In this document: positions 5,489 through 53,300 of the stretch, piece by piece
How the letters are laid out: every line of letters begins with the position of its first letter
Numbering within the stretch: the stretch's first letter is position 1
Translations under genes and position numbers: made by a program
The notes under the pieces: model-generated
What the model saw: the letters and a program-made list of their open reading frames with translations, nothing else
The model's database searches: none
Told to the model about the DNA's origin: nothing
From: Bugula neritina
Taxonomy: Eukaryota; Animalia; Bryozoa
Length of the DNA stretch: 64,000 bases
Direction of reading: 5' to 3'
Assembly: GCA_964035545.1 (NCBI GenBank)
Contig: OZ037771.1
Location: 8,363,408 to 8,427,407 of the forward strand

Positions 5489-5519
<31 letters not shown>

Positions 5520-8500
5520 CACTTACTTACTCACTTACTTACTTACTTACTTACTACTAACACTAATTTCTCTAATGAACTTTCTGGGGAATGTGTCCCA
5601 ACTCTTTGTAGAATGTGTCCCAACTCTTTGTAGACTATGGCCCAATTCTTTCTAGATTGTGTCTCAACTCTTTGTAGAATGTGTCCCAACTCTTTGTAGA
5701 CTATGGCCCAATTCTTTCTAGATTGTGTCTCAACTCTTTTTAGAATGTGTCCCAACTATTTGTAGAATGTGTCCCAACTATTTGTAGAATGTGTCCCAAC
5801 TCTTTGTAGAATGTAGTAGAGAAGCTGGTGCACGACGACACGTGGGCACAAGATCTCGCCGATTCTATCAACCAGAGAAAAGATGAGACGGAGCATCTGG
5901 CTGTAGAGAAGATTCCGGAAGTTCTGGATATAACCAAAGCTGACCCAACATTTGATGAGTTTCACCAACTTATAGGTGAGTTGAGTCATGACTCCTATAC
6001 TTCATCTCCTAAACACCTACAGTATTCACAGTGTCCTACCTACAGTGTATTGTGGTGAGTTATACCAGTACTGTGTGTTTAATTGACTCAGTTTTTGTGT
6101 GAGTTGATGCATCCACACTTACCATTTGCCTCGTATTTAATGACTGCAAGTTTAGTCAATTCAAACTGTTGCTATGTTGCGAAAATAAAACTTTTCTTTG
6201 ATTATGACTTCAATATATAGTATCCAACAGCTAGCACCCTAAGACCTAGATAACAGACAGGGCTGTAGAGGATGTTGCCGGTTAGAAGTTTTTCTCTCTC
6301 TGTATGAATTAATTGTATCTAACCTTAGTGTACTTAGAACTTGTTGTAGGTACATCTGGATTACACGTATTAGATAAAGCACACATCCGCAATGATGCAT
6401 ACAATGCAGTATACACATGTAGCCTGTGTGACTGTAGGACTTTTCTTTTGCAGAAACTAAGAATAAAAGGAAAGGAAAGCCTACTAAAAGAGACACACCA
6501 GAGAAGATCACACCTCCAAGTGAGGCTCAACTTTTGAATGCTCCAGAGGATTCTGGGTTCCGTCAGCTGCTAGAAGATCACTCTCAGCTGCCGGCTTCAC
6601 ATGATGCCGTAGAGGTCAAGACTTCTGCCAGGTCGAGGAGGAACATGCAGCCGGTTGTGAAGGGTTTGAAAGCTCGTAACCTGTATGACGGCACGTCAAC
6701 TGATGCCGCAGGTGTGCTGCAGGTAGAGACTCCCCACAAACAGCAGAGACTGGCACAGGGGAAAGGAAAGAGAAAAATATGCTCTCTTACCACCACCACA
6801 CCTAACAAAACTTCCCTGCATCCAGAGAAAATCTCTGTTTCCGGTAAAACTTTAAATTGAATGATTTAAAAATATTAGTTGAGTTGTTGTGTTGCACTCA
6901 ACAATAGCATGTAGAGGTTATGTCACTGGGACCTGGTTTATAAAAAATATGTTTGTTTACATGTATGTAATTTAGTTGATTTATATTTTTAGGTAAAGCT
7001 GAATCCATTTATAACTTTGTGAAAATATTTGCAGATCTTGTACCTGGATCCAAAAACAAAAGTAAGAAAGATGCTAGTTTAACATTTCCATCCATAGCCT
7101 CAGCTTTCTCCCAGTCCACTGCTGCAGAGAATATTGCGGGGGTTACAAACACTGCCCTGTACTCACAGTCTACGCTGCTGATGTCTCAAACTGTGCTGCC
7201 CGTCGCGACACCCGCCTACTACTTTGTAGCCCCCTCTTCCCAACAGACGCCGTATATTGTAACTCAATCTGCTCCGTCCGCTAACCCAGCACTTCTCTCC
7301 AACTCCCTGGTGAATCCCGGACTTGGCCAGCCGACGCCTTCTAAGTCTATGGGTATTGAGGAGACTACAGCTCTTCTCTTCAATGTTCCCTCTGTGCCAC
7401 AAGAAACACACGCTAGCTTAACCAATAGTAACGCACTACACACTGCGTCAACCAATAGTAACACACTACACACTGCGTCAATCAATAGTAACGCACTACA
7501 CACTGCATCAATCAATAGTAACGCACTATACACTTCATCAACCAATAGTTATGCACTACACAATGCGTCAACCAATAGTAACGCACTACACACTGTGCCA
7601 ACCAATAGTAACACTTTACTCACTGCGTCAACCAATAGTAACACTTTACTCACTGCGTCAACCAATAGTAACACATTACACACTGCGTCAACCAATAGTA
7701 GCACTGAACTAAATTCATCAACCAATAGTAACACTCAAGTCACTGTATCAACCAATAGTAGCACTGGACTTACTGATTCATCCAAAGCTGGTGCTTCGCT
7801 TGATAGTTCTGCTACCACAGCTGGTGCACACCAAAAAACTGGCTTAGCCAAGGAATTGTAAGTTACTCAGCATGACTACTTTGTTAAATTTAGATTTTAA
7901 ATGCATTTAATTATTTTCAGTTTAAATGTTACATTTCTGTGTGCCATGTCAAGTCAGTTCTCTTACTTTGTTATTTCTGTCGGCAGGAAAAACAATAATC
8001 AGGAAAATTTCACAAATTTCAAAGGCAAAACACAGCCACTTGCAAAATCTAGTGAAGATAAAAGCAGCATTGTAACAGCTAAATGGTCTCCCTGTGAGTA
8101 TCTCACTCACTCTCTTCCGCTAAACACTAACTTCACTATCACTAGCCTCACTATCACTAGCTTCACTAACACTAACTTCACTAACACTAACTTCACCATC
8201 ACTAACTTCACTATTGCTAACTTCACTATTTCTAGCTTCACTATCACAAACTTCACTAACACTAACTTCACTAACACTAACTTCACTAACACTAACTTCA
8301 CTAACACTAACTTCACTATCACTAGCCTCACTATCACTAGCCTCACTAACAGCAGCTATTTACTGTTTCATTTTTCTTCACCTTTACTTGATTTTACTTT
8401 TTTTTATTCGCTATTGTTACTAATCAGCATTTCTTCTCATTATTTGTACCTTTGTTCTGATTATCCTTTGTATGTTTAAGTTCTGTCTGAGATAGGTAAT

Positions 8501-24300: not shown

Positions 24301-27300
24301 TTTAGATTGGCATTAGCAAGCCTGCTCACCAAATTACAAAACATTATTTTTTATTCATTGTATGGACTAAACTAAAGCTAACAGTGGTCTGGTAGCACAA
24401 GAAAAATGAAAATTAGTTTTATAGAAAATCCAATGATGAAAGCAATTTTGTTTCCTGATTTTGTTAGTAGATTGTGTGAGTAATAATTACCTTGTTCTGC
24501 TTGTCTACAGTCAGTGTAGATAGTGTTTAATTTATCTTGTCCGTCATTGATGTTACTTTAGTATGTTTATAGATGTAGCAGTGTTCACCTTATTCTACCC
24601 ATATACAGTGTCAGGAAGATTTACCTTGTTTTCATTACAGATAGTGTTGTGAAGTTTGACGTCTGCTGGTGGATGAGGTTGGTGCCCACAGACTATTGGC
24701 CGACCCGTAAGACAGTACTGGTCGAGTCAAACAGAGATGTCATGGTAAACATTTGATAAAACTATTACACAATTTCATATCACATAAACAATAGTTTAAA
24801 CAGTACATAATATCCTAGTTAATTTTACAATTTTCTGCCCTTTGTTGTAGCTTAATTATGTTTCATTTGTTGGGAAAATTCACAATGAATGTATAACCTG
24901 AGTAAAGCAACCTTTTCAGATAGAATTGAAAGCTAATAAAGCCAACCATCCACTTAATATTCACAGGTTTATGGATTCAACAAGGAGCTGTTTTCGGCTG
25001 ATGGCTTCTTTGTTGTTCCAACTGACGAACTTGCATTTTCTTATGTCTTGGCCGCCTATGATGAAGCCAACATTGCTACTCAGTTCGCCATTTCTGCTTT
25101 GGAAGATACCAATGTGCAAATCACATTGCCTTCTAATCGTAAGGAAATTTTCTGCTACCCTGTCTTGTCATATGACATAAAGCACTTCTCTGTATGATTT
25201 ACTTTCTATATTGATGGTTATATAAATTATATTTTTAACAAACATATTATTTTCCGTTAAACTTGTATTATAAAGTTCAATTCAACAAATTCAACCGTAC
25301 AATACATGCTAGTTTAGACAGAGTGAATAATTCAAATTGCATCATTCTAAATTCATTACATATCTTATATTAGTAAATAACTTCTTTTACAGCTGATTTG
25401 ACTGTGCAAATAAACTACAGGGGTCTGATCTACACCAACGGAGACACTTTCACCATTGTGCTAGGACAATACGAGACCTATCTTGGCCAGAGCAGAGGAG
25501 ACTTAACTGGAGCTTTTATTGTAGCAGATAAACCGGTACGTATGTTTGCATCACAGAGATGTCTGATACAGTCCAGCACTTTTAACTATTCTAACCAGCT
25601 GAAACAGTTATTCTACATATACTAATACTTCTACACTGAGTACTACATATACTAGTACTTCTACACTGAGTACTACATATACTAGTACTTCTACACTGAG
25701 TACTACATATACTAGTACTTCTACACTGAGTACTACATATACTAGTACTTCTACACTGAGTACTACATATACTAATACTTCTACACTGAGTATTACATAT
25801 ACTAGTACTTCTACACTGAGTACTACATATACTAATACTTCTACACTGAGTACTACGTATACTAATACTTCTACTGAGTACTACATATACTAATACTTCT
25901 ACACTGAGTACTACGTATACTAATACTTCTACTGAGTACTACATATACTAATACTTCTACACTGAGTACTACATATACTAGTACTTCTACACTGAGTACT
26001 ACATATACTAGTACTTCTACACTGAGTACTACATATACTCTACAGATTGCTGTGTTTTCCGGAAATGTGAGAAACAAAGCTTCAGCTGGATCAAGAGATC
26101 ATCTTGTGGCTCAACTTCTTCCAACCGGAGATTTCGGTACAAAGTTTGCCCTTTCGCCTGTTCCAAGGACGGAAAACTATGGTGACAATGCTCGGATTAT
26201 AGGTAATGTTATATTCAGTGCTAATATATAGGTAATGTTATACTCAGTGGTAATATATAGGTAATGTTATATACAGTGATAATATATAGGTAATGTAATA
26301 TACAGTGGTAATATATAGGTAATGTTATATACAGTGGTAATATATAGGTAATGTTATATTCAGTGGTAATATATAGGTAATGTTATATACAGTGGTAATA
26401 TATAGGTAATGTAATATACAGTGGTAATATATAGGTAATGTTATATTCAGTGGTAATATATAGGGAATGTTATATTCAGTGCTAATATATAGGTAATGTT
26501 ATACTCAGTGGTAATATATAGGTAATGTTATATACAGTGATAATATATAGGTAATGTAATATACAGTGGTAATATATAGGTAATGTTATATACAGTGGTA
26601 ATATATAGGTAATGTTATATTCAGTGGTAATATATAGGTAATGTAATATACAGTGGTAATATATAGGTAATGTTATATTCAGTGGTAATATATAGGTAAT
26701 GTTATATTCAGTGGTAATATATAGGTAATGTTATACTCAGCGGTAATATATAGGTAATGTTATATACAGTGATAATATATAGGTAATGTAATATACAGTG
26801 GTAATATATAGGTAATGTTATATACAGTGGTAATATATAGGTAATGTTATATTCAGTGGTAATATATAGGTAATGTTATATACAGTGGTAATATATAGGT
26901 AATGTAATATACAGTGGTAATATATAGGTAATGTTATATTCAGTGGTAATATATAGGTAATGTTATATTCAGTGGTAATATATAGGTAATGTTATATACA
27001 GTGGTAATATATAGGTAATGTTATATTCAGTGGTAATATATAGGTAATGTAATATACAGTGGTAATATATAGGTAATGTTATATTCAGTGCTAATATATA
27101 GGTAATGTTATATTCAGTGGTAATATATAGGTAATGTTATATTCAGTGGTAATATATAGGTAATGTTATATACAGTGATAATATATAGGTAATGTAATAT
27201 ACAGTGGTAATATATAGGTAATGTTATATACAGTGGTAATATATAGGTAATGTTATATTCAGTGGTAATATATAGGTAATGTAATATACAGTGGTAATAT

Positions 27301-30300
27301 ATAGGTAATGTTATATTCAGTGGTAATATATAGGTAATGTTATATTCAGTGCTAATATATAGGTAATGTTATACTCAGTGGTAATATATAGGTAATGTTA
27401 TATACAGTGATAATATATAGGTAATGTAATATACAGTGGTAATATATAGGTAATGTTATATACAGTGGTAATATATAGGTAATGTTATATTCAGTGGTAA
27501 TATATAGGTAATGTTATATACAGTGGTAATATATAGGTAATGTAATATACAGTGGTAATATATAGGTAATGTTATATTCAGTGCTAATATATAGGTTATG
27601 TTATACTCAGTGGTAATATATAGGTAATGTTATATTCAGTGGTAATATATAGGTAATGTAATATACAGTGCTAATATATAGGGAATGTTATATATACAAT
27701 ATTGATATAATATACATGTAGGTAATATATGCGGTAAGATATGCAATGCTAATTATATAATATATGTAGGTGTAAGTAATATATGTACATGTATGTTGTT
27801 AATATGCTCCACAAATGAGTATAGGCTAAGTTTTGATTGATACTACCTGCACACACATTTGTGCAAGAAATGTATGCATGTTATATCGTAGCCTCCAAAG
27901 CAAACACTGATTACACCATCAGAAGTGAGTCTGGTATAGAGATACAAGGCACTCTGCAGAATCCTGGCGACTACTACGGATTTTCTGTTCAGAGATCTAT
28001 TGTGATTACAACTAGTGAGGATGTGGAGGTGAGTTCAAGGTCACACATGTTTCACGACACTTCCTAAGTTATAAATATTTTAAACCTATCGGCAGGCTTG
28101 CTACAGTCAACGCCTCAACTGTATTGAGCATGTCTTAACTTCCTTTTAGTTGCCAACATCTGTTTAGGCTAAGCTGCTAGAGTTCTCATTGCATGTGTTA
28201 CTGGTCAAAGCTATGAGGTAACAATTTCCAACGTAACTTTTACAGGTCATACAAATGGTGAGGTCTCAAGCCGCCCCGAGGATATCAGACGTTGCTGATC
28301 CTGCTATGTTCTTATTGGTCAGTGAAAGTCAGTGGCTGAATGAGTACAGGTCACCAGCCTTGACCTCAGAGGTTGGCAATGGGGCTGCTTACCAAAAGAA
28401 CTTTGCTTTCCTTGCTATTGCCGTAAGTTCAACAACTACTCTAAAGTATTATCAGAAATCCAACTGGTTATTTTGCATATAGATAGATAGGTATTACATG
28501 TGTACATGCGCAAGCATACTTCGCATACATACCACATAACATGCATGTGTGTATACACATACATGCATATATACTAACTTAATATACTTAATATACAAAT
28601 TCAACTCATTAAGATTCAAAATATCTTATCAGAATAGATACTCCTAATTCAAGATTTAAATTTATAAGAGTTTTTGTTGCTTTTTATTGAAATTCGGCCT
28701 CACTTTCATTTTATATTTGTAAAGGAGCATAACTCCTGCAGTATTCCAGTACACTTTCTGATAATCTTCATGGGACAAATTATTTGAAGGTGGATTTCAA
28801 AATATTCTTGTGATCAAGATGTTAAACTTAACTGCAATAAAGTGAATACTAATAAGAAATTTTAATTTCATCTTTTATTTTATAGAGTGGCAACCAAAAC
28901 GGACTTCGAATCAACGGTGGCTCCTTTAGTGCAACCTGGGACGTTATTGACGGAATCGCAATGTCGTGGGTGACTGTTAGTTCAAGCAGTCAGCGGTTTA
29001 CCCACGTATCCAATGTAGACTTCGGTGTGATGGTGTACGGCGCTTCAGATAGAGAGAGCTACGCCTTTGCTCTAGGTGCTGACCTTAGCAACAGCAAAGT
29101 AAGACAAAACACTATATTGTAAGTTACGACATCTGATTAGGTAAACAATATTTGTTTGTTTGAGGAATAAACCAGTTTATTAAATTCATTTGGGTAGTGC
29201 AGTATAGAATAATTCTAATAGCCTAAGTCTTTTAACTGTCTTTATGAATTTTGGCTTGGGACGTGGGTTGAAACTTCTTCAAGGACATAGCTGTTTTCTA
29301 TACTGCTTACCTTATAGAACAGAGACCTATTTTCAGTTTTTCTATTACTACACATCTTATTGTTGTAAAATGTATTGCTGAGCATTTGGAGGAACATTTA
29401 ATTATTTTCTACAGTAGGTTATAGACATCATTGCAAATTGCTATTTCTATTTGAGCTCATTGGTATGAATAAAATTGATATCGTTCAATTGAGCTCATAT
29501 TTACATGAAAATTCACACATGCAGGAGGAGATAAAATATGGTGGGGAAACTCTGAGTAAAACTGTATTTAATAATGGTGGTAGTGTAAGTAGAAGTTGTT
29601 TTCCCTATTGTACTCCTTCTTGTCACCTGTAACTGCATGCATGCCTCCATCCTCTCTAAACACTGTAGCTCATTCCTTGTCCACCCTTTACACATGTTCT
29701 TACAGTTGTAACTCACCCAGTAAGCTTTAATTGGAAGTTAGTACTAAATTAATTGAGGTCATTAAAAGGTATTGAAAATATAACAAGCTAGCCTTCAGCA
29801 CCTTTTTGTATAGTGTTAGGATACACAGCTATTTGTCTGCATGTCTACCTGTCTGTTTTTTTGACTACTTGTATGCATGTTTGTCTGTCTGTCTACCAAA
29901 TATTTTTATAAGCAAGAATTTATCTTTAACAGAAGATTGCTTTTACATCTCCATCACAGAGGAGATTAGTATGCTGTATAAATATAACCATGGCTGATTT
30001 GTTACGTATATACAGCGATAGATATAACCCCAGCGTATCTAAATCATACAACAACTACATAAATTGCCGTAAGCAAAAAATATGTAGATACGAGCAACAC
30101 ACCTGGGATACTGAGATTGACATCTTTAGTTTGGTCTGTGGACTATACTATCTTTATTCTTTAACACCTATGTAAGCATCTGAGTGTACGCTGACTCAAA
30201 TTTTATAGTGCCAGGCTTCATTCATGGTCAGAAGTGATGGGGTCGATAATGACTGTGATGGTCAGGTTGACGAAGAGTCCTGCAACTCTGTTGATGATGA

Positions 30301-31738
30301 TGGTGATGGAAGAATTGACGAAGACTGCGTCCAATCATCCACTGAAGCTTTTGGAAATGAATATGTGATCATGTTTATGGAAAATAATGTTGATGACAAT
30401 CCCAATGCTCAATCCTTTCTTGAGGTAATGTCTGTTGCAGCACAGCTAGCTTATCACAGCTGGATGTTTTTCAATTAAAAATAAACTCATTCAATTGGCT
30501 GTTGTTTAATTCCATGAGAAAACATAAAACACATTCTATAATAGTTGAGCTAAATCACCTTTTAAAAAGTTTTGCGACTGTTTAGACTGAATTAATGCAA
30601 ATAGATGAAATATAAAGTACTAGTATTATTTGTTACTTTTAAACTTGTCACTATAATAAAAACAACCAAAAAAACTTTGTTTTTTTATATATAATATCAC
30701 TTGAAAAATTGTTCTCTGATAGTTGAATATTGAATATTTTAAATATATTTTTAGATTTACGTTTCTGCCGTGGACAGCACTGCGACTGTAACTTATACTC
30801 TTACCAATGAACTTGGAGTATCGACTCGTACAATTGCACCCGGAGAAGTAGATATTTTCACTGACCTTCCAGTGTCCTTGAGACATACAGGCAGCGGAAT
30901 TGACACCAAATCTATTCACATTGTAGCCAGTGAAGATATTGTAGTTTATGGTATCAACAAACAGACTTGGTCTACGGATGGTTTCCTAGCGTTGCCAGTT
31001 GATGTTGTTGGCACCGAGTACTATACGGCTCATTTCCATCCGGGTTAGCTGTAGTCATACTGTTAAATCATAAGTGTACCTAGTTCATCATATAAACTAC
31101 ACTCACACAGATTATTGTTTCATAAAAGATATACTTATTCTATTATATATAAAATGATCATTAAAGTTTATTGACAAAAATGATGAAGTTCAGCTCAATA
31201 ATTGTAAATAATGTTTGCTTGATGACTCAAGGGTTTCTTACATTGATTAGCAGAATTGGTGAAATTGTAATTGACTCCAACCCTGTTGGTTAGCTGTTCT
31301 TCCTATTCAGAGAAATTTTTTATATTTATGGTACTTAACTATCCAACTAGACTCACTTAATAACTTGTATGTCACAAATAGGTTCGGATCTAAACGAGTT
31401 TGCCTTCACTCCAGTCCTTGATGATGGTTCAGCTACTCGAGTTACAATCACCATGCCTAATCGAGATATCACTGCCAGCTTTGGTGGAGTCTCGATAGGC
31501 AATGGCCAGTCCTACACAGTTGATGTGGAATTTGGACAAACAGCACAATTTCAGGCCGCCAACAACAATGACAATCTTAATGGAGTTCATATTGCATCTA
31601 CAAAACCGATAGCAGTTTTCTCTGGTGCGTTTTAGTTTATCATTGTTAAAAGTGTTTTACATAAAAATAATCAGTGTTGCGCAAGTTGTAATAATTTTTT
31701 TATTTCTTTAGATTCCACATTGCATTTAAGATGTTTAA

Positions 31739-31770
<32 letters not shown>

Positions 31771-31783
31771 TGCGTGCAGGTGT

Positions 31784-31814
<31 letters not shown>

Positions 31815-34800
31815 GGCGCGCCCATGCCGTGTGTCTTAATTTAATAAATTTACACAAATGGCTAAAATATGTATAAAATAAAGCTATTTATTTACTAATA
31901 GTTTCGCACAAAAAAGTCAAGTTGTGTTTAAATATTAAAGGATATTATGTGTTTGGTCGGGCATTTGGTGCTAATGTAGTTTATGCAATTTGTTATGAAT
32001 GTAAAAATAAATGTTATAGGAAACGTGAGAGCTCGTGTGGATCCTACTACAGCCAGCTCTAGAGATCATTTAGTTCAACAACTTGCGCCAGTCTCCACAT
32101 GGGGTACTGAGTTTATCACCTTACCAGTTCCGAGACAGGATGACCGAGGAGATTTCTTCTACATCACCGCCTCTACTGCCGGCACTAGTTTTGATGTTGC
32201 CATCAAAAACAATAATGGAGGAGCTGTCTCAGATACAACATACACTCTAGCTCAGCCAGGTGGGTACTTCTTCAATGACTGCAGTAAAACTTGCTAAAAT
32301 AAAACTTAAAATAGTAAGGAAGTTCCTATACAGGACAAAATTAGACATTTGGTCCGTCCGGTTCATAAAACTATATTTATATATTATACATGTTTAACTT
32401 CTCTAAGGCACTAATTCTGGTGGAAGATACTGCCTTTTAATAAATTTTCTTGCATAAAACTATACATTGCTATGGTTTGGTTGTGGAAACTTATGGTCCA
32501 ATCAGAGGGTTGTAGGTTGTAAACTTGTGGAGCATGTGTAGGAACCTTATGACTCATTAGAGTGTACCTGACATACATTACCCATCAACATCTGATTGCC
32601 ACTGTCTAAAATGCAGAGTTAGGAAAGATAGGCCTTGCCAATGTTTTTTTGTTATGAAATACAAATTGTCCTGCAAACAAAATTAAAATACCTCAAGAAT
32701 TATTTATGGCACAAACTTAAAAAGATAACATAAGACAAGCTTTAAGCTAATAAGCTATGCCTTGTGTTATTTTAACCAAAATAGAAAGTTCTAGCTTGCC
32801 ATACCACACACATGGTTATCATAACATCCTATAGCTGCATACATCCTATAGAATGTGATAAGGGTAGGTTATGTTGGCCAGTGATTCCTTAATATTCATA
32901 AATTTTTATTTTTGCCAAAAAGGAGGAAACGTATTAAAAATTCTTCTGTTATGTTAAGTTAAGCAAACAAATTACAATTATTTGGCTATTCATAGGGGAT
33001 TTCCAGCAAATCGAAGTTGGTAGTTTTCAATACAGCCATATTCAGTCTACTCGCCCTGTCCAAGTGTTCCAGTATGTAAAGACAACAGCTAACAAGGATT
33101 CTGACAATGCTGACCCAGCAATGATGGTAAGAGTTTCCTTTCCTTTTCTTTTATTGCTTGTGAGAGCCATCATGATACAGTGGTGTACAGTGGTGTACAG
33201 CGGTGTACAGCGGTGTACAGCGGTGTACAGCGGTGTACAGCGGTGTACAGCGGTGTACAGCGGTGTACAGCGGTGTGCAGCGGTGTACATGGTACAGTGT
33301 GTTTGAGAATATGAAATACACTAAGTGGTAGTTGTGAGATAAGCTCTCAATCAAAGACTACTAAGATTCATGAGTAGTCAACAACGGAACTTGCATAAGT
33401 TTTCTGGCTTTTACAGCTGATACCTCCAGTAGAACAATGGTCAAGGAACTACCAATTTGTTACGCCACGAACAGGGCAAGAGATCCCAGGGGGTGGTGGC
33501 TTTGAGCCCTTCCAAACTTTTGTCATGATTGCCATTGCTAGAAATGATAGAGACGGACTACGGTTAGATGGTGCTCCACTAAACAACCCTGCTTGGGTAC
33601 CCCTTACAGGTATATATGAAAAGTATACGTTTTAATTAGTGACCTTATTGCATACATATTATTAGCAATGCTATCATATGATCTTCTGCATAAAAATCTT
33701 AGTTGTTAATTGAATGAAATGCAATTGTTTATTTTACAATTTAGAAAGCTTAGTGTATATCTAACTGTATTTAATTTTTTTCTATTTTAAAATAAAGCGA
33801 CAGGTGAGTTAGGTTCAATATAATTGCTACCAACAGTTGCAGACTAGTGTGCAAGGGTCAAGGTCTAACTTTCGCTTTGTGCTCCTAAATTTTGGCCTCA
33901 AGCCATAATAACCAGGAACCTTAGTCTATTTCTTGAACTCAATTTTTTCATTGGGGGCCTGCATGCATGTATTGCAAGAAAAACTTTAAACCTTCAATTG
34001 GGCTGAGCTGAAGGTCTCTTTGTACTGTATTTATTACTGAGTTATATGAAATTGGACTATGCTACAACTGTTGAAAATCACTAGCTTACTATTGGTCATT
34101 GTTGTGTTCACATGCTATACTAACTCCATTTTTATTGGCTAAACTGCTTTGAGCATCATTACTAAATGTTGTTTACCACTGGTAGTTATACAGTTACAAT
34201 ACTTTTGCTACATATACTTTAACTCGCCAAAATGCTGCTTTATTATTTTGCTTGTAATGCCATTTGCTAGTAGCGGATTTACCCCTATGCTCACACCACT
34301 ACTGTTCTGCTAGTAGAGTGTTTGTCCCCCCTTGCTCTTAATTTACTGACTAATGCTGCTGCACTGCACGCTGACTATGAGTCTGCTACAAGGTGGCACT
34401 TGACTGGAACACATTCATTGAGCATAGAGTATTACTTGCTATAGTTTACTGTTTCAGAGAACGTAACTTACTGATGACAAAGGAAAGTTGGTTTGTGTAG
34501 TTTTAGGCTATAAAGTTAAAATGATCGTACATAGCTACAATTTTCACACAGACACCCACTGTATAAATATGGAGTAAGATAATGTAGAAAAATATGCCAA
34601 CTTAAAATTAAGATCTCTGGTTATGCTTACTGTGAGTGATCAACTGGGTGCTTATAATTTCCAGGAATAGCAATTTCTGCGACTCAAATTGAAATTGGGA
34701 CTGTTGGCAGACACAGTCTTACTCACATCGACGAAGGTGTCTACTTCCAGGCGCTTATGTATGGCCGAGCTGACAGGGAATCCTACGCCCTTCCTCTGGG

Positions 34801-37800
34801 TCAGTAGCAATATAAGATACTACTATACAGTATAATATACTACTATACAGTATAATATACTACTATACAGTATAATATACTACTATACAGTATAATATAC
34901 TACTATACAGTATAATATACTACTATACAGTATAATATACTACTATACAGTATAATATACTACTTCACAGTGTAATATACAATTATACAGTGTAACATAC
35001 ACTACAGTATAATATACTATACAGTGTAATATACTATGCAGTGTAATATACTATACGGTGTAATATACTACTATGCTGTGTAATATGCTATACAGTGTAA
35101 TATACTATACAGTGTAATATACTATACAGTGTAATATACTATACAGTATATTATACTATACAGTGTAATATACTATACAGTGTAATATACTATACAGTGT
35201 AATATACTATACAGTACAATATACAATACAGTGTAATATACAATACAGTATAATATACTATACAGTGTAATATACTGTACATTATACTATACTATACAGT
35301 ATACTATACTATACAGTGTAATATACTATACAGTATAATATACTATACAGTATAATATACTACTATACGGTGTAATATACTATACAGTGTAATATACTAT
35401 ACAGTATAATATACTATACAGTATAATATACTATACAGTGTAATATACTATAGAGTGTTGTCAAACAGGTATGAGACTGGTGGCTCAAGGCTGTGTGCCT
35501 ACCACACAGACTGATGGTGATAATATTGACAATGATTGTGACGGGTCAATTGATGAGGAGGTGTGTAATGGAATTGACGATGATATCGACGGGGTAGTAG
35601 ATGAAGATTGTGGTGGTAAGACATCATCTGGAAATAAACTAAATAGAATAATTGACTCAAAATTTCTGCATCTTATAGGCTGTGATCCTGCTATCAATAA
35701 AGTGCTGATTCAGTTGCCAAAGTTTACAAATAGAAACTGTCTAACACAAGTAGGCATAGAGATTTCTGAGGTACAAAACCAGGCACAGTATTTGTATCAA
35801 CATTACTTGCAGTAGAATGACTTCTATAGTATGTGGGTATGCAAACAATCGTCTTATAGTTATAACGTGACTGCTTGTAGATGGTGATGCATCCGGCACT
35901 GAGTTTTACGTAACTTACATGGAGAACACGGTCGAGTATCCACAAGACTTGGATCTTGAGCTTTACATCGCCGTGGTTGGATCAGAGAGGGCGACAGTAA
36001 CTGTAAGGGTGCCTCTATTTGACAACCCTAACTACGACATGACAACTATGGTTGAACCTGGTGTAGTTCAAGGCTATGGTTTAACCCATCGCTTGAGGAA
36101 TGTCAATCAAGGCATAACTGGCAATACGGTTTATGTGAGGTACGAATGCTATTTTATACTGAATAAAATACAAGTTTCAATGTATGACTGGCTTATGGGA
36201 ATGGTTAGAATAATTTCCTTCTTTGTGCTGGTTTTCGGTTCAACTATGCAGAACATGTTTGCTGATAGTTATATAACAGTAATGGTTCACTTGCTGACAT
36301 GCTTAACTTTATTTGCTGCAATTGCTATTTCGAGTGAAAGCCTGTTAAATACTTGTATTTTACAGAGCAAGTTCAGATGTTGTGGTGTATGGAGTAAACA
36401 AGGAGAAGTTTTCTAATGATGCCTTCCTGGTGTACCCCCAGAGTGCCCTTGGTACAAACTACTACACTTGTTCCTGGGCCCCTTCAACTTTAGACACTGA
36501 GTTTGCTGTTGTAGCCACTGCAGATAGTACTACGGTATGATGCCATATATATGTGCGTGCGTGCGTGTGTGTATGCGTGTGTGCGTGTGTGTGTAGTCTT
36601 TTTAAATTTAAATTTTTCAAAATTGTAAACAGCTATAAAATGGTGTTGTACTTATACTTTAGGTTACCATAACACTACCAAACAACAGAGCCAACCTACA
36701 AGTTGAGGCAAATGGAAATGTTTACTCTAGTGGGCAGAGCTTCACAGTTACACTTGACAGGTTCCAGGTGTATCAGGGCCAGAGTGAGGGGGATCTGACG
36801 GGCACCCGAGTGCAAGCTAATCGTGGAGTTGCAGTCTACTCAGGAAATGTGAGAACACTTATTGAGTACTCTGCCTCCAGAGATCATTTAGTCCAACAGA
36901 TGCTCCCTACTGGTAAGTCTTACTCTATGTAGCCTCAGTAAATCTGTCCCCAGTATATAAGCCTTTTTACAAGCAATACACAAAACTAGGTATAACAATA
37001 ATATAAATTATATAATTATTTAAGTGTAAACTAGCTCTTTTTAAAAAACCTAACACGTTTTGTGCTCTGATTAAAACTGCTCGCTAATTTACAATAATAC
37101 AAAGCAACAGAAACATGCAGTTTAAATTATACCAATATCAGTTAAAATGCCCGTGATTTCTGCACAGGTGCATATGGCACAACTTTCCAAGTGGTTCCTT
37201 TCCCTGACAGAACTGTTGGTGATAGCTTAAAGATTGTTGCTAGCACTTCAAACACTGAAGTGTCTGTCAATGGAATCCGCATAGACACACTGGGAGCTGG
37301 AGAGTTCGCTTCATACCCACTGAGGTAATATTGAATGACGTAATATTATACAATACTGTGACTAATTAAAGTTGCTTTATTTATATTTTATTATAAATTG
37401 TATAATTGAACAGCAAAAATCTTTAATAATACATTAATTAGTGCATTTAAAAATTCCTCATTATACAATTATAATTTCCTGATTGTGTTGAGAAGACAAC
37501 TCTAATACTCTGATAATGGTCTATATTCAAGATTAAATCATTCTGTAGTATACTTTAATATGCTGTGATTCGCGACAAAACTCTTGCTCCATAACCGTCC
37601 CTTATATTTTTGCAGAAGATTAAAAATGAGATGTTTTTGACATAATTAATTTTAGCTCTTCAAGCAGCGTTACCCTGACTGCAAGCAACCCAGTTATGGT
37701 TGTCCAGTTTGTCAAATCTCAAAATGGCCGTGACAACACTGAGAAAGCCGATCCTTCTATGTTCATCGTACCTTCAGTAGACAACTACGTAACCAGTGCT

Positions 37801-39607: not shown

Positions 39608-42600
39608 TTAGCGCTGGAGAGATTCTTCTTTCATGCTGGTAATTCGACTCAATGATGGTGACTTCATCAATTCGTTGAAAAGAGTTTTTTCACTGGAATT
39701 CAACGCCATCAGAGGTCTAAGACTAGACAATAAACTCTTGAATAGATCAGGAAACATAATCTCTTGACTGGCCAGCAACTGCTTAACCCTGTGTCGTTCC
39801 TAAAACACAAGAGAAAATGTCAACTACACCAATACAGCCAGCCAATGTAAAACCTTTGTCCACTGTAGAAAATATTACAATTGTAATAGCTGTTAAATGC
39901 AGGAGACTTTCCATGAACTTAGTCACAAATCTTTGCAGAAAGGTAAACAGTTTAGAAAAGAATAAGCATTTTTAAACACTCAATTTTTGAATAGAACAAA
40001 ATTTATATCTTGGGATTCATTCATCAATAAATACCTTAGGTTGTTCAAAGCAAGCTGGACAGTTTTCGGCAATAATAGGCAGCTTTTGCGTTTCCGCAAA
40101 ATCTCGGAGACTCTTTTCTCTTAGATATACAAGTGGCCGGATGACTCTTAAGTCACCTTCAGCGACTGTATAATGGGCTTTCATTGTTCTGAGTAATCCA
40201 TTGTGAAATACCGACATCAGAAAACTGGCAAAAATACCAACAAGCATATAAATTCCTTTTTATGTGATGGACAATTTACCTAATAAAATTTTACCTTAAA
40301 GTATTTTCTGAGAATATTTACAGGTATTTTGATGGTTCATTGAATACAGCCATATCATATAGCAAAAGTAACGTCTTTTTTACGTTTTATTATGAAAAGA
40401 TTGAAAATACTGGAAATGTACAGTTCGAGGTAAAAGGTGCAGTAATAGAGAAATTGAAAAAAGCCTGGGTTCTAGATTAGAGTTATAGCAACAAAAATGA
40501 TGTTCTCATGATACCTTCAACCTGAGCTCCAATCAAAAATATATTAAAAACATTAAAAATCATGGGCCAATAAAATTTCCCTATTACTGCACAGTTTAAG
40601 GCTTTAAGCTATATCTTTAGCAATCTCTTGTTGTGTAGTCTAGTAGCTGATTGGTAGGAATATGGCTACGTGTCTGCAGGGCTATAGACACAGACAAGCT
40701 AGTATATCACGGAGAGGATACGATGAGCACAACAAACAGTTTAGCTAACATAATTAAACAGTGATGCCTATTGCTTATTACTCGGAGTGACAATGCACCC
40801 AACCAGTTTATGTTACACACTGCAAAACAGAGACAGAAATAAAATATTTTCAAGGATTATAATAGCTTGAAGAACAAAAATGTATATTGATCGAAATTAT
40901 TTTTTTAAACTAGAAGCAGCTGTAATTAATGCTTCTTATTATTAGCTTGATATGTTTTGGCGATTATTCAGTAATTGACAAGTAGACCAGCAAATTTCAT
41001 TACATATAATATTGTATATAATTGACAGTAATGGTGGAAGGCTAATACTTTACAAACCATATTTCAAAATGTTTTATAGCAAATAGCAAAGATGAGTATG
41101 TGTTATGAATGTTGCTTTTATTCCATTATTCCAATAGTTTAAAGATGGAGAGTGTAGCATGCTTTACGCCATGTCACATGTGGTGTCGGAAACACATATT
41201 AGACTGTTTTCAGAGTAATAAACAATTATTTTCAAACAGATGTTAATTGACTGTGATGATTAATTAATTAAAAAAGTAAATATATACTAAAGTTTTAATT
41301 ACAAAATGGTAAAATTACTTTCATATATTTCAAACAAAAACAAGTACAAAGATAAATCATGTAACAAAGTGAACTTTGTTATGAAGGACATTGAAGGAAT
41401 AGGAGTTGCTCAACAAACTCCATTTAATCGCCTTTCCATCCTCTGTCTGGTTCTCCTGGAACCACGTCTTGACCGAGATCTAGAGGATTTGCGTGACGAT
41501 TTTTTAGCTTTTCTACTTCGTGTACGTTTGCCACGTACAGAGGGTTTTTTTCTCAAGGATGAACGAGAAGTTTTCCTACCACGCTGTGATTTCTTTTTAA
41601 ATAACTTATTAATTACACTAGCACTAAAAGAATAGAAAAATAAGGCATTTTGAGTACAAAGAAAAGAAGTGGAATAAAATAATGTAATGAGTTGCGCTGT
41701 AGAAATGATACGTTAAAAGACTATACATTGAGGGAAAGCAGTATTAAGTTTAAAATACCTTATAAAGACACTTGTCAATGTGCCACACTTGTAGCAGTAG
41801 CCTCGAGCCATTGTCGCGCCATTTGGCACAACTCTAGTTTTAGTATCACACTGCATAGTCTTCTTTTCACAAGTGAAACAGTATGCACAGATTTGCACGC
41901 ATTTACTCTTTGAACGCATCTTATATTTTGCATATGACTATTAATCTAAGCTGTTCAAATGCTCCGATCCTGTTGGTGCAATTATTTAAAAACTAAAAGC
42001 TTGACCTGCAACTTCAATGATGTCATCGAAAATGTAGACTTTAAATGGCTTCCTGTTAGATTCTATCAAACCATTTATGACAAGTATACACAATGGAGAC
42101 TCATTGCTAGCTTGTTTGAAAATATCATAAATACCATTGAAATGTGAAAATCAAAAACATTTACGGCAACAAAATAATAATTATTCTGAGTATATAAAAT
42201 GAGTATTAACATAATAGTACAGCAATAAATATTGTGTGCCTATGCATTTCTATCAGCAAGCAATGTGCAAATTTGCTGTTTCAAAAAAGGCATAGATTTT
42301 AATAAATATAGCAAAGCAACAGCAGTCAATCTGTTAATATAAGTAATCAGTACTAATACTGATTACTAAGCACTAGTACTGATTATTAAGTACTAGTATT
42401 GATTACTAAGCACTAGTATTGATTACTAAGTACTAGTACTGATTACTAAGCACTAGTACTGATTATTAAGTACTAGTATTGATTACTAAGCACTAGTATT
42501 GATTACTAAGTACTAGTACTGATTACTAAGCACTAGTACTGATTACTAAGTACTAGTACTGATTACTAAGCACTAGTACTGATTACTAAGCACTAGTACT

Positions 42601-45600
42601 GATTACTAAGCACTAGTACTGATTACTAAGCACTAGTACTGATTACTAAACACTAATACTGATTACAAAACAAGGCTGTCTTATAGAAATTACAAAATAT
42701 TCTGGAGCTTTACGCAAGGCAAAAGTTCGTGACCGAAGATAAACTAAAGAAAAGTATACATGAGAACTACACTAGAACACAACAAAAGTGCATCAACAAA
42801 AGATGTATTGAATGAAAAGTAAAGAACTACTGGAGCTACTACCTTACATGATAAGAAAAAATAAACAATCAAAGACGTTGATATGCTTTAATGAACCACG
42901 ACCAGAAATACCAATTCTAACTAGGGCGTCTGGGGAAAACAGACGGAAAGGGGGGGAGGGGAAAAAGAAAAATATCATTTTGAATACAAATAGAACAAAT
43001 AATGTAGAAGGTACTTAATGCACAATTCTATATATGAAAATGTGGTATATCATTGCTGGTTCACGTGTGGATAAGGCAAATGAAATGCCTGTAAAAACTA
43101 AACATCAGACTAAAAGCATCGCGTGTAACTTTTTGTGAAAACTGCATTTTCTCCTTAAAAGTGCCCTAATTTTCATTAAATTAAAGAAAGAAAATGGACA
43201 GAAGTGCTAATAAATAAATTAAATAATTTTTTGCGCAGCATACTTCATAGAATTCATCGTGATGAAAACAACTTCTTCTCACCTTTCACCGCTATGTCCT
43301 GATCAGGTGGCAGGTGAAAACAACTCTTATGTGAAAGTAAAATATGCCGAGGCAGTAGCCACTCATTACTTCATCATCTACTAACCTTTCAGCAAGGTCA
43401 TCCAGGTGTTGACCCAATGCCAGAACATTATAGCCATTATCCCGAGCACACTTGTAGATTCTTCCTCGTTTCATACGACTACAGAAACTGCATATGGAAT
43501 CACATCCACCTTCCAGCTCTCCTGCCTGCTTCATGATACCTGGAAGTGACATGTATTCAGTCAGACATTTGGTTCTCCAACAATACAATCAGCTTCTTAA
43601 CATAAATTGGTGTGGGTTTCTGAATATAGTTGGTTAGTGGTTTCTATCAGACTGATAAATCTATGGAACTACGACTAGAAGCTTTTATTAATTGAACTAT
43701 TACCACAATGAGATGAGGGGTTTAGCAAATGAGATTTTTCTGTGACTACTGACTTAAAAAAACAGTGCAACTGGCTAGTGTAAAATTTATCTTTCAAGTA
43801 TGAAATGGCACTTAAAGGGGTGATAAATTAAATGCAATTTAGCATATTGCCAATTTTAATTAGCACAAAGTTGGCCAAAAATTGCAGTTCTTTTTGTGAG
43901 CTTTTTGCTGAATACAGTTTTAATCAATGATGTTTAGTTCCATAGCAAAGGATATAAGAAGTAAAATAGTTTCTATTTAGACAATAATTTTTAGATAGCA
44001 ATATAAAAAAACATAATTCATTCAAAATTATTTCAACTTGACCGAAAATAAATGGTAATGGTTAGCATGATGGTATATTACAATCAGAAACAAAAGCATA
44101 ACACACTTTCTTAAAGGAGCATTATATTTAAAAATATTATTTAAAATTCTCAAAAAAAAAATCAAAATTATAAATAATTACCTGATGACCATGATGATTT
44201 CAAAGCATAATTTTAGAAAATACACCGATATACCCGAAATCGTTTTTCCTCGAATAGCAGGAACAATGAGTTAATAAAGAAATGATGATGGTATGATGAA
44301 GTTATATAAACTCATAGGAGATGAGTTCAGGAATAAATGAACTAGTTTTTAGGCAAAGAAGAAATAACAAAGGGACAGTGACATAACTTAGGGCAGAGTT
44401 TTAATATCACTACTCTTACAGCCAGAACTGACAAAGCCATTGAAGCAGCCTACCTTGCTCTTCGTAGAAATAAGGAAGATTTAGTTGAGCCAAGTATGGT
44501 ATAAGAGGTCGGGGGTCATAGGCACTGGAACCAGGATCTACTGTGACAGCACCGAGGGAAAACTCAACACCCTGTAGATACCATAAAGTCACTCTTATTA
44601 TCAGTTATAAATGATCAACAACCCGATACACTATAATGTCTTAATACATACGTATATAAATTTCACGGACACCTTTTTGAAAAAATATGCTCTGGAGCTC
44701 TGGAAAACTGTAGGACTCCCTGAAACTTGATACGTTATGAAGCAGTCAATAACACTCTTGGTACAAATTGATTCGCACGCATAACATAATAGCATCAGCA
44801 GTTGGTTGATTGTGGCAATAGGAAATATACTCCAATAAAAATAATTATCATGTCACAATGTCGTTACGTCACAATATCATTATGCTATGTCATCATGTCA
44901 CAATATCGTTATGTCACAATGCAGTCATATCACAATATCATAATGATGCCAGTCATACTTTGCTTTTTGCCACAAACTGATACTGTTTCATGGCATGTAG
45001 AAGAGATAGAGAGTCCTTGCCACCAGACAGGCATATCAGAATCTTGTCACCATTATTTATCATCTTGAAGTCATCTATAGTCTGAAAAAGTAAATATCTC
45101 ATGTATATGTACTTTATTACCATTGCATAACGCATCAGTAGATGCAATTATTAGATGCCAGAACAAAGTAAGTTGCCAATTACTTACTACCAAAGCAACA
45201 CAATAATATGATCTCGCAATGAAATCTACCCTTTATTAAAAACATGTTTAAAAACGCCTATTTCATTTCATTCCATTATACATTACCCACACAATTGCTT
45301 CTCAAAGCATGTTAAAATGCTACTGTGAGTTACATTTGAAGTTGAGTTTCACAGTACATAATGTCGATCACCAATATTTCAGAGAGAAAATATAGAACAT
45401 TACTTTATGCTCTTTGAGCCTAGTGTTTGCCTTTAAGATGAAATCCCACTTGAAGAAATCATAAAAACTTTATGTATTGAAATGTATCTCTTCCACATAA
45501 ATTATATTCATACATCCTAAACACAGCAACTGCAGGCAGACATTACATCCATGTTAAGTTGCTACTCAAAGCATTATCAAAGATTTATTTCTGAGTTGAT

Positions 45601-50300: not shown

Positions 50301-53300
50301 ATAATTTCTGGCATCGTTTCATATACTGTATTTAATATTGATTATAACTACTAAAATAATAACAGATTTCAATGACATAAGCATTTAATTCAGTTGTTAA
50401 AAAAAACAATTATGAAATATGCTGAGCTAGCAAGACCCAAATTACTCTCATAAACCTACTGAGCTGAACAAGTCACACGTCATATTATAATGCTTCATAT
50501 ACCACTAGTATACAGATAAACACGCCGTATTAAAATTTCTAATAAATGAAGGAATAAACTATTCAACCACACAAGTAACAAAATATTTCTAACATTGAAA
50601 CTATGACATTGAGCAAAATGATAGGAGCAGTGCATATCTTACCCAACTACGCTAAAACGAATGAAATATAGCATTAGTGAATGCGTGTGTCTGCTATGAC
50701 CTAACACGGCACCAAAACTAGGTAACTGCTAAGAAAATGCGGCCGAGTTCTCACAACTAATGAAGAAGAAATTGAGAGCCAGACTCTTAAGAAGTTTCTA
50801 TTTTGAGGCAACTTTTAAAATGTTGGATAAAATCAGCAACCAGGAATACACTTTCAGATTTTAGAAACTTACTACTGCCATTCCTTTAGTATTGTAGCCT
50901 CACATTTGAGTAATATTGAGCAATTCAGTTCAACCAGTTGACCACTATATTTTGGAACTTTCTGCATATCATAAAACTTAGAATTAAATGTAAAGAGGCA
51001 GTATAAAAGGGACTCGTATATTACCAGAAATAGACTGGCCTCATGTTTGAACTATCTTTGATGGCTCAGTAATTAATATACAAAACTCCATGAAAATTAT
51101 AAACTAGCGTAGAACATTTGGTAGTATATTTGTGTATATCAATAGATCAAACATAGATACTCATTTGGCCATCTTAATGAATCCAAGTGGTTCTCATCAC
51201 ATAAATTGACCATTTTAAGCACGGCAAGCTAAGCTTACTGTTGATAAAAAAGTTTTTAAAAGTAATTTTCAACTCTGCCTTTCTCCAAATGATTCAAAAA
51301 TTTATTGAGGATATTTATAGTTGCATTCTTTTCTATGGCCTTGCATTCCTTTTCATCGCGAAATGCTAGTAAAGCATATTTATTTAAATTAATATAAATA
51401 GTTACTGCAGTCTGATCAACACACTTTATTATATTCAGAATATAACTCTACATTAGGACTTACCCTCCCCTGAAGGGATTCATATTAAGCTCGACATAAG
51501 GCGCTGCCATAGCATAATCCCAGAAGACGAGAGCACCTGCTTTGTGTAGGCAAATGGTGATGTCATCGACTGGCAGCATGTTGCCAGTGATATTAGAGGC
51601 AGCAGACATGCAGCCTATGAGCTTCCGGTCAGTTCCTGAAAGTTTCTGTAAGCACAATGCTAGAGTTGATTATCACAAGAACAATAAAACACAGGAGGGG
51701 GGGGGGCAAGAAACGTATGTAAAAACGTGATTAGCCATAGAGGGGAAAGTTACTCAATAGCCTATTCAGTAATGTTAGTCAATAGCAAAGATACACACCA
51801 TATAGATAATACACTGTGTTTCCATTGCTTTGCGCTATGCGGATGGATGCATATGGATGCTCATACGGATGAATTTGTGGTTGCGGTTTGTATGAACCTA
51901 TGGTTCTGGTGTGATTCGATGCAACTGTTTCCAAATATGAAAAACTCATTCACATAATGCAAAGCTTGGAAACGCAGTGATGGTGCAATACCACTAACAA
52001 CATGGCTGTAAATTTGAATCCTGTTAAATGAATTATAACTAAAATAGAGTAAACTTAATAGTCCGTAAATGTAGCCTGTATATCTGTACAACAAGTTGAT
52101 GGATGGAGGAAGGAATAAAGACACACCTTCAGTACACTGTGTAGTTCTCCCATGTCAAAACTGCCTTCTTCAGTGACACCAATTTGGTAAACCTGCAGCA
52201 ATATGAATCATATACTACACAGTAGACTATTATCACATATATCAAATTACAATTTTCAATGTAATGTACCATTTACATCAGCCCTGACACGTAATATTAT
52301 CTCTAGTTATAAAGGTACACTGAAAACCAACTGATACTAAGAGTTCTAAACAACTCTGGCATTCTCAGTACTTCAAACTAAATTGAAAGACTGCTAGGCC
52401 TGGCCCAGCTCTTCCTGTACAGACAAGTAAAAACGAGAAGGGTACTATTTATAGCAACATTATGAACATAAACTAGTCAGAGAGATCACGGCCATCTCCC
52501 AAGTTTACTAGAACATTGATTCTGGGATACTTGACTAGATCTTTGACAGTCTCTCTCAATCTCTAGTCATTAGAAAGCTGAGTCTACTATTAATATAAGT
52601 ATATGTACTGTAGAAGTACCAATATTAAATTCTATATTGACCAGTTATTATGTCACCTAAATGCATTATAGGTAATGTTACGTAATATCTTGATAATAAT
52701 GCATGAAAGTCCTTATGTTTCAGAACAGATTTTTACGGAGTAAAAACACATAGTTGGTCAGAATGACCAACTCACAAGCTTTCTAATGATACAGAAACAG
52801 AAAGACTCCAAGAACTGTCTTGGGTGTTAAAATACACAACATACAGCATGTAATTATCACATAGAGATGTGTATTGACTGGCACACAAACACTGGACTTA
52901 CTTCTGATGCAATCTCTCTCCATGGAAGCAAGGTAGAATGGTGATCATATGGTCCAGCTATGACTATAGGACTTTCATCTACTGGGCTGAGAGTCAGCGA
53001 GTTAATGAGAAGGTGCACAGCACCAGTGCATCCGCTGCCGGCGAATATCACGGCATCATGCTCTCCTGCATTCACGCAGTCTCGTATAATAGACCTGTAA
53101 GAAGCAGACTGAATATTTGTGTGCAAATATATTGATCTGGTGAGCAATGAATGGTGCTCTTTATATTCTCTGGAGAGTTGGTGTCATGGGATTCAAACCT
53201 ACCACACCAAAAGTTCATTCAACATGTTAAGGCAAACACACTAAGACTCACAAAATGAACAGAAAAACACCTCTATTTCTGGTAATGAACTGTTTTATAG

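Follow-up and report, generated by a model that had tools for sequence, protein, structure and literature searches.

A two-exon gene predicted to encode a DUF5679 zinc ribbon with a polycationic tail lies in an intron of a SufS-TtcA-like gene of Bugula neritina

Results

Structure of the nested gene

The DNA analysed here (hereafter the window) is a 64,000-nucleotide stretch of the genome of the bryozoan Bugula neritina (assembly GCA_964035545.1, contig OZ037771.1, positions 8,363,408 to 8,427,407; coordinates below are counted from its first letter). Within an intron of a tRNA-modification gene that appears to combine SufS-type cysteine desulfurase and TtcA-type sequences, it carries a short nested gene, located on the same (minus) strand. 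As read from the sequence, the nested gene has two exons separated by a single GT-AG intron, with the ATG at 41919-41917 and the stop codon TGA at 41412-41410 (Table 1). The exons contribute 53 + 1 + 70 codons, the single codon being that for the serine split between them (AG/T), and the predicted product would have approximately 124 residues. Retention of the intron would introduce one in-frame stop. No second copy of exon 1 or exon 2 was detected within the window.

The gene had been proposed in a first-pass annotation of this DNA, whose coordinates, quoted exon-1 peptide and residue counts for exon 2 (31 Arg/Lys, 14 Ser, one acidic residue) all proved to be exact. That annotation had also stated that the track of open reading frames (ORFs) shows no more than a read-through of exon 1 and an antisense shadow of exon 2. 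The ORF list over the locus does contain only these two entries, namely a 68-aa read-through of exon 1 (41713..41919) and, on the plus strand, a 109-aa antisense ORF at 41306..41635.

The zinc-ribbon domain

Exon 1 matched the Pfam family DUF5679 (PF18930; E 3.1e-6), with residues 13-49 aligned to positions 1-37 of the 40-position model, and this was the sole Pfam family obtained at E <= 10, the limit also used below for exon 2 and for the related sequences. Exon 1 scored 27.7 bits, little more than the curated cut-off of 27, and the orthologous protein P0002 (see below), analysed alone, fell short of it at 25.2 bits. Because of this thin margin, independent support for the assignment was sought.

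A phmmer search with exon 1 against 1.84 billion representative proteins returned three proteins at E <= 0.001. The best of them, P0001, is a metagenome protein of 1406 aa (E 1.3e-14, seven matched stretches), in which Pfam identified an FGE-sulfatase domain along with seven DUF5679 domains (218 bits). No other protein emerged as a strong non-orthologous relative, and P0001 has no viral signature. The architecture of P0001 is itself unusual, with seven DUF5679 ribbons split by acidic linkers and followed by the C-terminal FGE-sulfatase domain. The second protein, P0002 (53 aa, E 3.9e-11), shares 54% identity with exon 1. The third, P0003 (154 aa, E 7.9e-4), was rejected as a relative, since it matches no Pfam family and, on reading, lacks the first CxxC knuckle.

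As a control, a hidden Markov model (HMM) was built from the seven P0001 repeats alone. This model gave 23.4 bits for exon 1 of the window and 29.6 bits for P0002. Among 2000 composition shuffles of exon 1, of which 1979 scored at all, the best reached 8.9 bits, and the best of a further 2000 shuffles with the four knuckle cysteines fixed reached 16.3 bits; thus, none of the shuffles in either set attained the score of the window. In a three-way alignment of the window sequence, P0002 and one P0001 repeat (A2), the residues Y13, C14, F15, C17, E18, K19, K20, N33, G34, G40, C42, C45 and S50 were invariant. The Pfam match, the HMM control and these invariant residues together indicate that the assignment to DUF5679, which the first-pass annotation had made, is right. 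The four-cysteine module is predicted to form a zinc ribbon, and exon 1 as a whole is basic, with 9 Lys/Arg vs 2 Asp/Glu in 53 residues.

That the domain might be an ordinary eukaryotic zinc finger is unsupported, as exon 1 gives DUF5679 only; the sole other Pfam entry of P0002 was an 8-residue match to a ZNF451 finger (E 0.12). In NCBIfam, exon 1 produced one chance-level match and exon 2 none. The PHROGs collection yielded no families for exon 1 or the tail of the window, nor for the tail of the second-species gene described below, and four chance-level entries for P0002 (E 0.071-0.93). Neither a tblastn search of 50,697 phage records (no match) nor a scan of GTDB genomes (35 pattern stretches, none encoding a relative) added further members. 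A search for protein homologues gave no candidate with exon 1, only P0002 among two candidates with profile A2, and no scoring protein among 25 candidates with exon 2. In all these searches no viral or Polinton protein was returned as a relative of the nested gene. The PDB, queried with the single sequence and with the profile, gave only chance matches and no solved structure related by sequence.

Conservation of the locus in a second species

The end of P0002 coincides exactly with that of exon 1, a hint that this protein represents a gene call on the first exon of another spliced gene. When JGI metagenome contigs were scanned with a pattern derived from an alignment of exon 1 and P0002 (A1), 234 stretches matched, two of which encode a relative. 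They lie on contigs L001 (2742 nt) and L002 (6089 nt), whose overlap is 99.8% identical. The two contigs come from two metagenome samples; L001 and positions 3334-6070 of L002 differ at 5 of 2737 nt, with one difference in nested exon 2, which is synonymous, and none in the host exons.

L002 is collinear with the minus strand of the window, the match extending over both exons of the nested gene and five exon segments of the host (Table 1). Only exons align between the two in blastn; introns and flanks do not. The aligned part of exon 1 is 54-60% identical to its P0002/L002 counterparts. In L002 the nested gene starts with an ATG at 4395, and its exon 1 ends CTG AA/GTAAGA; the donor, again of phase 2, falls at the codon position found in the window. 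The intron that follows is 184 nt long (3' end TCTCTTTGTAG), and exon 2 provides 99 in-frame codons after the acceptor, terminated by TAG. To judge from their sequences, the two genomes are deeply diverged; their GC contents are 34.9% vs 44.7% and synonymous sites are saturated. The first-pass annotation had looked to a conserved orthologue as a check on the gene, and L002 supplies one, in which the position and phase of the intron are unchanged and an in-frame exon 2 is again basic.

Over the 52 aligned codons of exon 1 the proportion of nonsynonymous differences (pN) was 0.28 and that of synonymous differences (pS) 0.74 (pN/pS ~0.38), and in the 42 core codons the values were 0.22 and 0.68, respectively. 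For four host exons pN ranged from 0.07 to 0.23, with pS > 0.75. The exon-1 proteins gave a local alignment score of 155 vs 27 +/- 5.5 for shuffled sequences, and none of 500 shuffles reached 155. Synteny, the kept intron phase and a pN well below pS led us to reject a chance ORF; taken together, the comparisons with L002 show that the nested gene is real and under purifying selection. The antisense ORF was rejected as the true gene: it has no stops in the window and three in L002, and the sense frame is open in both.

An in-frame TAG precedes the nested ATG, 21 nt upstream in the window and 33 nt upstream in L002, and the N-terminus M-x-x-K..K is common to the window and the L002/P0002 versions. 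Downstream of the stop codon, the window has a candidate polyadenylation signal (Table 1) and L002 has AATAAA at a distance of 88 nt. These three features, found in both species, favour a separate transcription unit. They also bear on a different view of the locus, in which the two exons are not an independent gene but alternative exons of the host, e.g. exon 2 serving as an alternative last exon that cuts the TtcA-like protein short and ends it in a basic tail. The nested exons do lie on the host strand, and in the window as in L002 the host intron has phase 2, as does the nested one, so that splicing from the upstream host exon into exon 2, or from exon 1 into the following host exon, would keep the frame. 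However, agreement in phase is expected a priori in about 1 of 3 cases, an in-frame stop stands just before exon 1, and the ATG and N-terminus are kept in both species. Moreover, on reading the window, no phase-2-compatible AG was seen between the upstream stop and the ATG, and a host product cut short at TtcA model position 160 would lack half of the enzyme. We therefore regard alternative host exons as very unlikely, and retain the reading of a gene with its own start codon; the shared phase may nevertheless hint at the route by which the tail exon was acquired.

The upstream regions share two motifs: a CRE-like 10-mer, GATGACATCA, in reverse orientation at -108 (window ~42018-42027) and -129 (L002 ~4266-4275), and an octamer-like motif, TCATATGCAAA, at -18 (window ~41927-41937) and -154 (L002 ~4241-4251). 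As promoter elements they were rejected as not significant, because a shared 11-mer was reached in 36 of 300 shuffles and the order of the motifs differs between the species; their sharing may be due to chance.

The polycationic tail and its possible target

The 70 residues encoded by exon 2 include 19 Arg and 12 Lys, i.e. 31 basic residues, as well as 14 Ser and a single Glu. The tails of the window and L002 genes are alike in composition (R 27/26%, K 17/13%, S 20/25%, acidic residues 1/0, net charge +30/+39). Lysine and arginine together make up 44% of the tail in the window and 39% in L002; for arginine and serine the values are 47% over 70 residues and 52% over 99, with 11 and 25 RS/SR dipeptides, respectively. 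Cysteines occur near the C-terminal end of both tails. The positional match is not clear, the alignment score being 85 vs 72 +/- 7.4 for shuffled sequences, with 34 of 500 shuffles reaching 85. As far as the two sequences allow us to judge, the tail is selected for composition rather than sequence, and it is probably disordered.

An origin of the tail from a microsatellite was rejected, as neither species has a tandem DNA repeat in exon 2 and both use all six Arg codons in the tail. Pfam listed for exon 2 of the window three chance-level families only (E 0.29-4.7, all under their cut-offs), and none for the L002 tail. No linker-histone family was found for either exon.

The structure of the gene and its family are established, and the second species has the gene at the same place, with the phase of the intron, the sequence of the domain and the composition of the tail preserved. 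Our preferred reading, held with moderate confidence, is that this is a cellular gene with its own start codon, situated in an intron of a SufS-TtcA-like host, whose product combines a zinc ribbon with a polycationic tail and would act as a nuclear nucleic-acid binder. From the sequence we infer a nuclear location and binding of polyanionic nucleic acid. Binding of nucleic acid in this generic sense seems reasonably probable; within it, a role in sperm would claim a minor share. The target could be DNA (in sperm compaction) or RNA (in a nuclear role), which the sequence appears to fit equally well, and the tail composition would likewise suit RS-type RNA-associated proteins and protamine-like proteins to the same degree.

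One specific possibility, that of the first-pass annotation, is that the product is a sperm nuclear basic protein (SNBP) that would replace histones and condense sperm DNA. It would represent a protamine-like class not described before, with a zinc ribbon acquired from a virus or Polinton as its core. Composition kept amid sequence drift is typical of sperm basic proteins, and the Arg/Lys-rich tail, with its RS/SR runs and near absence of acidic residues, keeps its composition in L002 while length and sequence drift; both tails also end with cysteines. Arginine, however, accounts for just 26-27% of the residues, lysine and serine are high, and RS domains fit these values equally. Fast turnover is usual for SNBPs, unlike what is seen here: the dN of the nested domain (0.26-0.35) lies at or just above the top of the range of the housekeeping host exons (0.08-0.27). 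The CRE-like 10-mer present upstream in both species would suit a sperm role, though the similarity is not significant, the longest shared upstream k-mer being matched as often in shuffled sequences as stated above. DUF5679 is common in polintoviruses (PMC11131425, PMC13215967), but no viral or Polinton relative emerged from any search. On balance, a sperm nuclear basic protein of this kind is unlikely.

Alternatively, the product may be a nuclear RS-domain protein acting on RNA (in splicing, the nucleolus or ribosome assembly), with the ribbon as an RNA or protein contact. The density of RS/SR dipeptides and the R+S content of both tails are consistent with this role, as are the moderate, housekeeping-like constraint and the retention of the gene across saturated synonymous divergence. 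The high lysine content is unusual for classical RS domains, Pfam gave neither an RNA-recognition motif (RRM) nor any other RNA-binding family, and no named relative was found. We consider this specific role doubtful, and keep to the more general reading of a nuclear nucleic-acid binder.

Host gene and genomic surroundings

The host had been described in the first-pass annotation as a desulfurase-TtcA gene, and NCBIfam matches to both TtcA and SufS bear this out; its Pfam families are Aminotran_5 and PP-loop. It appears to join SufS-type desulfurase exons (52860-53147) and TtcA-type PP-loop exons (45084-40032) on one strand. L002 holds the TtcA part of the host together with one upstream segment (corresponding to window 46420-46262).

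Apart from the antisense shadow, the host intron contains no other ORF of at least 90 aa, and no inverted repeats flank the nested gene besides those inside a 20-nt tandem array. The nested gene thus does not reside in a mobile element today. Residence in a Polinton/Maverick element is likewise not indicated: no neighbouring hallmark ORFs of at least 90 aa or terminal inverted repeats were found, and the site is orthologous in the second species. A decaying remnant of a mobile element or virus, or a chance ORF without present function, might be suspected from the frequency of DUF5679 in Polinton-type elements (PMC11131425, PMC13215967) and from the absence of an exact copy of the 68-aa read-through ORF from the protein collection. 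Such a remnant would hardly be expected to be orthologous and collinear in a second species across saturated synonymous change, with frames intact and splice signals kept, and the emptiness of the host intron also speaks against it. We judge this explanation extremely improbable.

The 20-nt tandem array is located at 42352-42666, approximately 430 nt upstream of the nested ATG. It comprises 15.8 copies with 92% matches and is partly palindromic, and L002 contains nothing equivalent at the corresponding point. The window is generally dense in minisatellites, with 25 Tandem Repeats Finder rows at a score of at least 150 (e.g. 26198-27694, 25613-26039, 34821-35458, 2646-3068 and 5057-5558). A 29-nt unit present in 51.6 copies coincides with the low-GC, high-GC-skew bin 26001-28000. 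On the plus strand, two adjoining ORFs at 57126-58087 resemble a fragment of a non-LTR retrotransposon reverse transcriptase (RVT_1, 24.2 bits, cut-off 29.6). Further plus-strand exons, at 30770-32297, belong to a gene whose product has an IgGFc_binding domain (44.5 bits in Pfam), a match that points to an animal genome. Rfam gave no families for the whole window.

Table 1. Coordinates of the nested gene, its host and the corresponding segments of contig L002 (a slash marks an exon-intron boundary)
Feature	Window	Strand	L002	Remarks
Nested gene, exon 1	41759..41919	-		161 nt; 53 full codons + 2 nt; 3' end ATA AG/GTATTT; phase 2
Nested gene, intron	41624..41758	-		135 nt; GT..AG; pyrimidine tract CCTTATTTTTCTATTCTTTTAG at 3' end
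Nested gene, exon 2	41410..41623	-		1 nt finishing Ser codon, 70 codons, TGA; basic Ser/Arg/Lys-rich tail
DUF5679 domain (predicted zinc ribbon)	41773..41883	-		Residues 13-49; knuckles C14-x2-C17 and C42-x2-C45; Pfam PF18930
Candidate polyadenylation signal ATTAAA	41294..41299	-		111 nt past stop; motif scan only
Host intron holding nested gene	40225..43385	-		3161 nt; phase 2; GAA AG/GTTAGT ... TGCCAG/T
Host exon upstream of nested gene	43386..43552	-		TtcA-like; 5' bound is the end of the aligned part only
Host exon downstream of nested gene	40032..40224	-		TtcA-like; 3' bound is the end of the aligned part only
Host TtcA exon	44956-45084	-		NCBIfam TtcA model positions 30-69
Host TtcA exon	43379-43552	-		NCBIfam TtcA model positions 121-160
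Host TtcA exon	40032-40223	-		NCBIfam TtcA model positions 160-218
Upstream host exon	52860-53147	-		NCBIfam SufS cysteine desulfurase family
Host segment	46420-46262	-	414-572	Collinear match
Host segment	45084-44941	-	2000-2143	Collinear match
Host segment	44577-44443	-	3209-3343	Collinear match
Host segment	43552-43379	-	3610-3783	Collinear match
Host segment	40277-40032	-	5455-5700	Collinear match
Nested exon 1 and counterpart	41886-41758	-	4425-4553	58% over 43 residues; between the last two host segments
Nested exon 2 and counterpart	41583-41446	-	4858-4995	Between the last two host segments
Phase-2 junctions, host and nested	43384-43387, 40224-40226, 41758-41760, 41623-41625		3776-3779, 4552-4554, 4735-4737	

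Discussion

Proposed mode of action

If the product is a nuclear nucleic-acid binder, its tail would bind the phosphate backbone electrostatically, with no sequence preference. Phosphorylation is known to weaken nucleic-acid binding by protamines and RS domains, and modification of the serines in the RS/SR dipeptides could tune (weaken) the binding of the tail in a similar manner. The zinc ribbon would add a folded, metal-dependent contact, conferring either specificity or self-association, and the C-terminal cysteines could form disulfides. A more far-reaching scenario is that a DUF5679 module, long fixed in marine invertebrates, gained a phosphorylatable polycationic exon and now serves as a germ-line chromatin condenser; this strikes us as decidedly unlikely.

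Several points weigh against the preferred reading. Nucleic-acid binding is deduced from charge alone and the gene is known here solely as DNA sequence, DUF5679 is a family without known function, and no solved relative emerged by sequence. The tails agree in composition, with no clear match by position, and the shared phase 2 would let exon 2 join the upstream host exon in frame. In addition, the Pfam margin is narrow, one of the three phmmer proteins is doubtful, and one other species has been found so far.

To judge from the literature searched, the novelty lies in the combination: a familiar domain placed in a spliced cellular gene of an animal and joined to a polycationic tail. DUF5679 has been reported among the commonest non-core genes of coral polintoviruses and mavirus-related elements (PMC11131425, PMC13215967). 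A spliced cellular copy that is under purifying selection, is fixed at one orthologous site and carries such a tail would be the first context pointing this domain to nucleic-acid binding. Short nested two-exon genes are missed by ORF-based calling, and probably by standard gene calling as well; the only trace of the nested gene among the 1.84 billion representative proteins is the exon-1 fragment P0002.

Comparison with known proteins

Elsewhere, DUF5679 is known from prokaryotes, large DNA viruses and Polinton-type elements. Exon 1 has the pattern YCFxCxKK ... NG ... G-x-C-x-x-C ... S, as do the bona fide repeats of P0001. The nested gene holds one domain, in a spliced cellular context, followed by a polycationic tail of 70-99 residues in the two species; P0001 has the domain seven times, with acidic linkers and an FGE-sulfatase domain.

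The first-pass annotation had mentioned a link between this family and Polintons, and the link is in print. A DUF5679 protein, described as a homologue of entomopoxvirus AMEV120, is reported from >40% of the stony-coral polintovirus regions (PMC11131425), and over one third of mavirus-related elements are reported to have the domain (PMC13215967); the passages of both papers that treat DUF5679 assign it no function. With these proteins the nested gene has the Pfam family in common, by published report only, and it differs from them in standing by itself in a host intron, outside any element, with the site orthologous between the window and L002. No search returned such a protein as a relative of the nested gene, and capture from a Polinton-type element is merely conceivable. 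In the literature searched, we found no cellular animal DUF5679 gene, no cellular DUF5679 protein with a basic tail and no zinc-ribbon SNBP.

The order of a small zinc module and an RS-rich C-terminal region is also that of ZRANB2 and SRSF7. The module of the nested gene, however, belongs to DUF5679 and is neither a RanBP2-type finger nor a CCHC knuckle, its tail is Lys-rich, and an RRM is lacking. SR proteins are defined by an RRM together with an RS domain that spans 50 residues or more and has >40% RS content; the nested gene falls outside this class on the RRM, none being found in Pfam.

H1-derived protamine-like proteins and protamines resemble the predicted product in having a polycationic, Ser-containing, acid-poor region whose composition is kept while its sequence drifts. 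Unlike the H1-derived proteins, the nested gene has no linker-histone winged helix or other chromatin family in Pfam, and its tail is lower in arginine than true protamines. A published account divides SNBPs into protamines, H1-type protamine-like proteins, testis histones and HMG-box proteins (PMC13148410). A zinc-ribbon type would therefore be new. Were the germ-line reading true, the gene would define a new structural class of sperm chromatin protein.

The dinoflagellate DVNPs and baculovirus P6.9 resemble the nested gene in concept only, i.e. as basic DNA-packing proteins of viral origin on cellular or viral genomes. No sequence match to them was found in PHROGs or in Pfam, in whose copy used here the presence of the DVNP model is unverified. 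A germ-line condenser of the kind considered above, if it exists, would add one more independent origin of SNBPs to those of the H1-derived and HMG-box types, and would be to animals what the DVNPs are to dinoflagellates.

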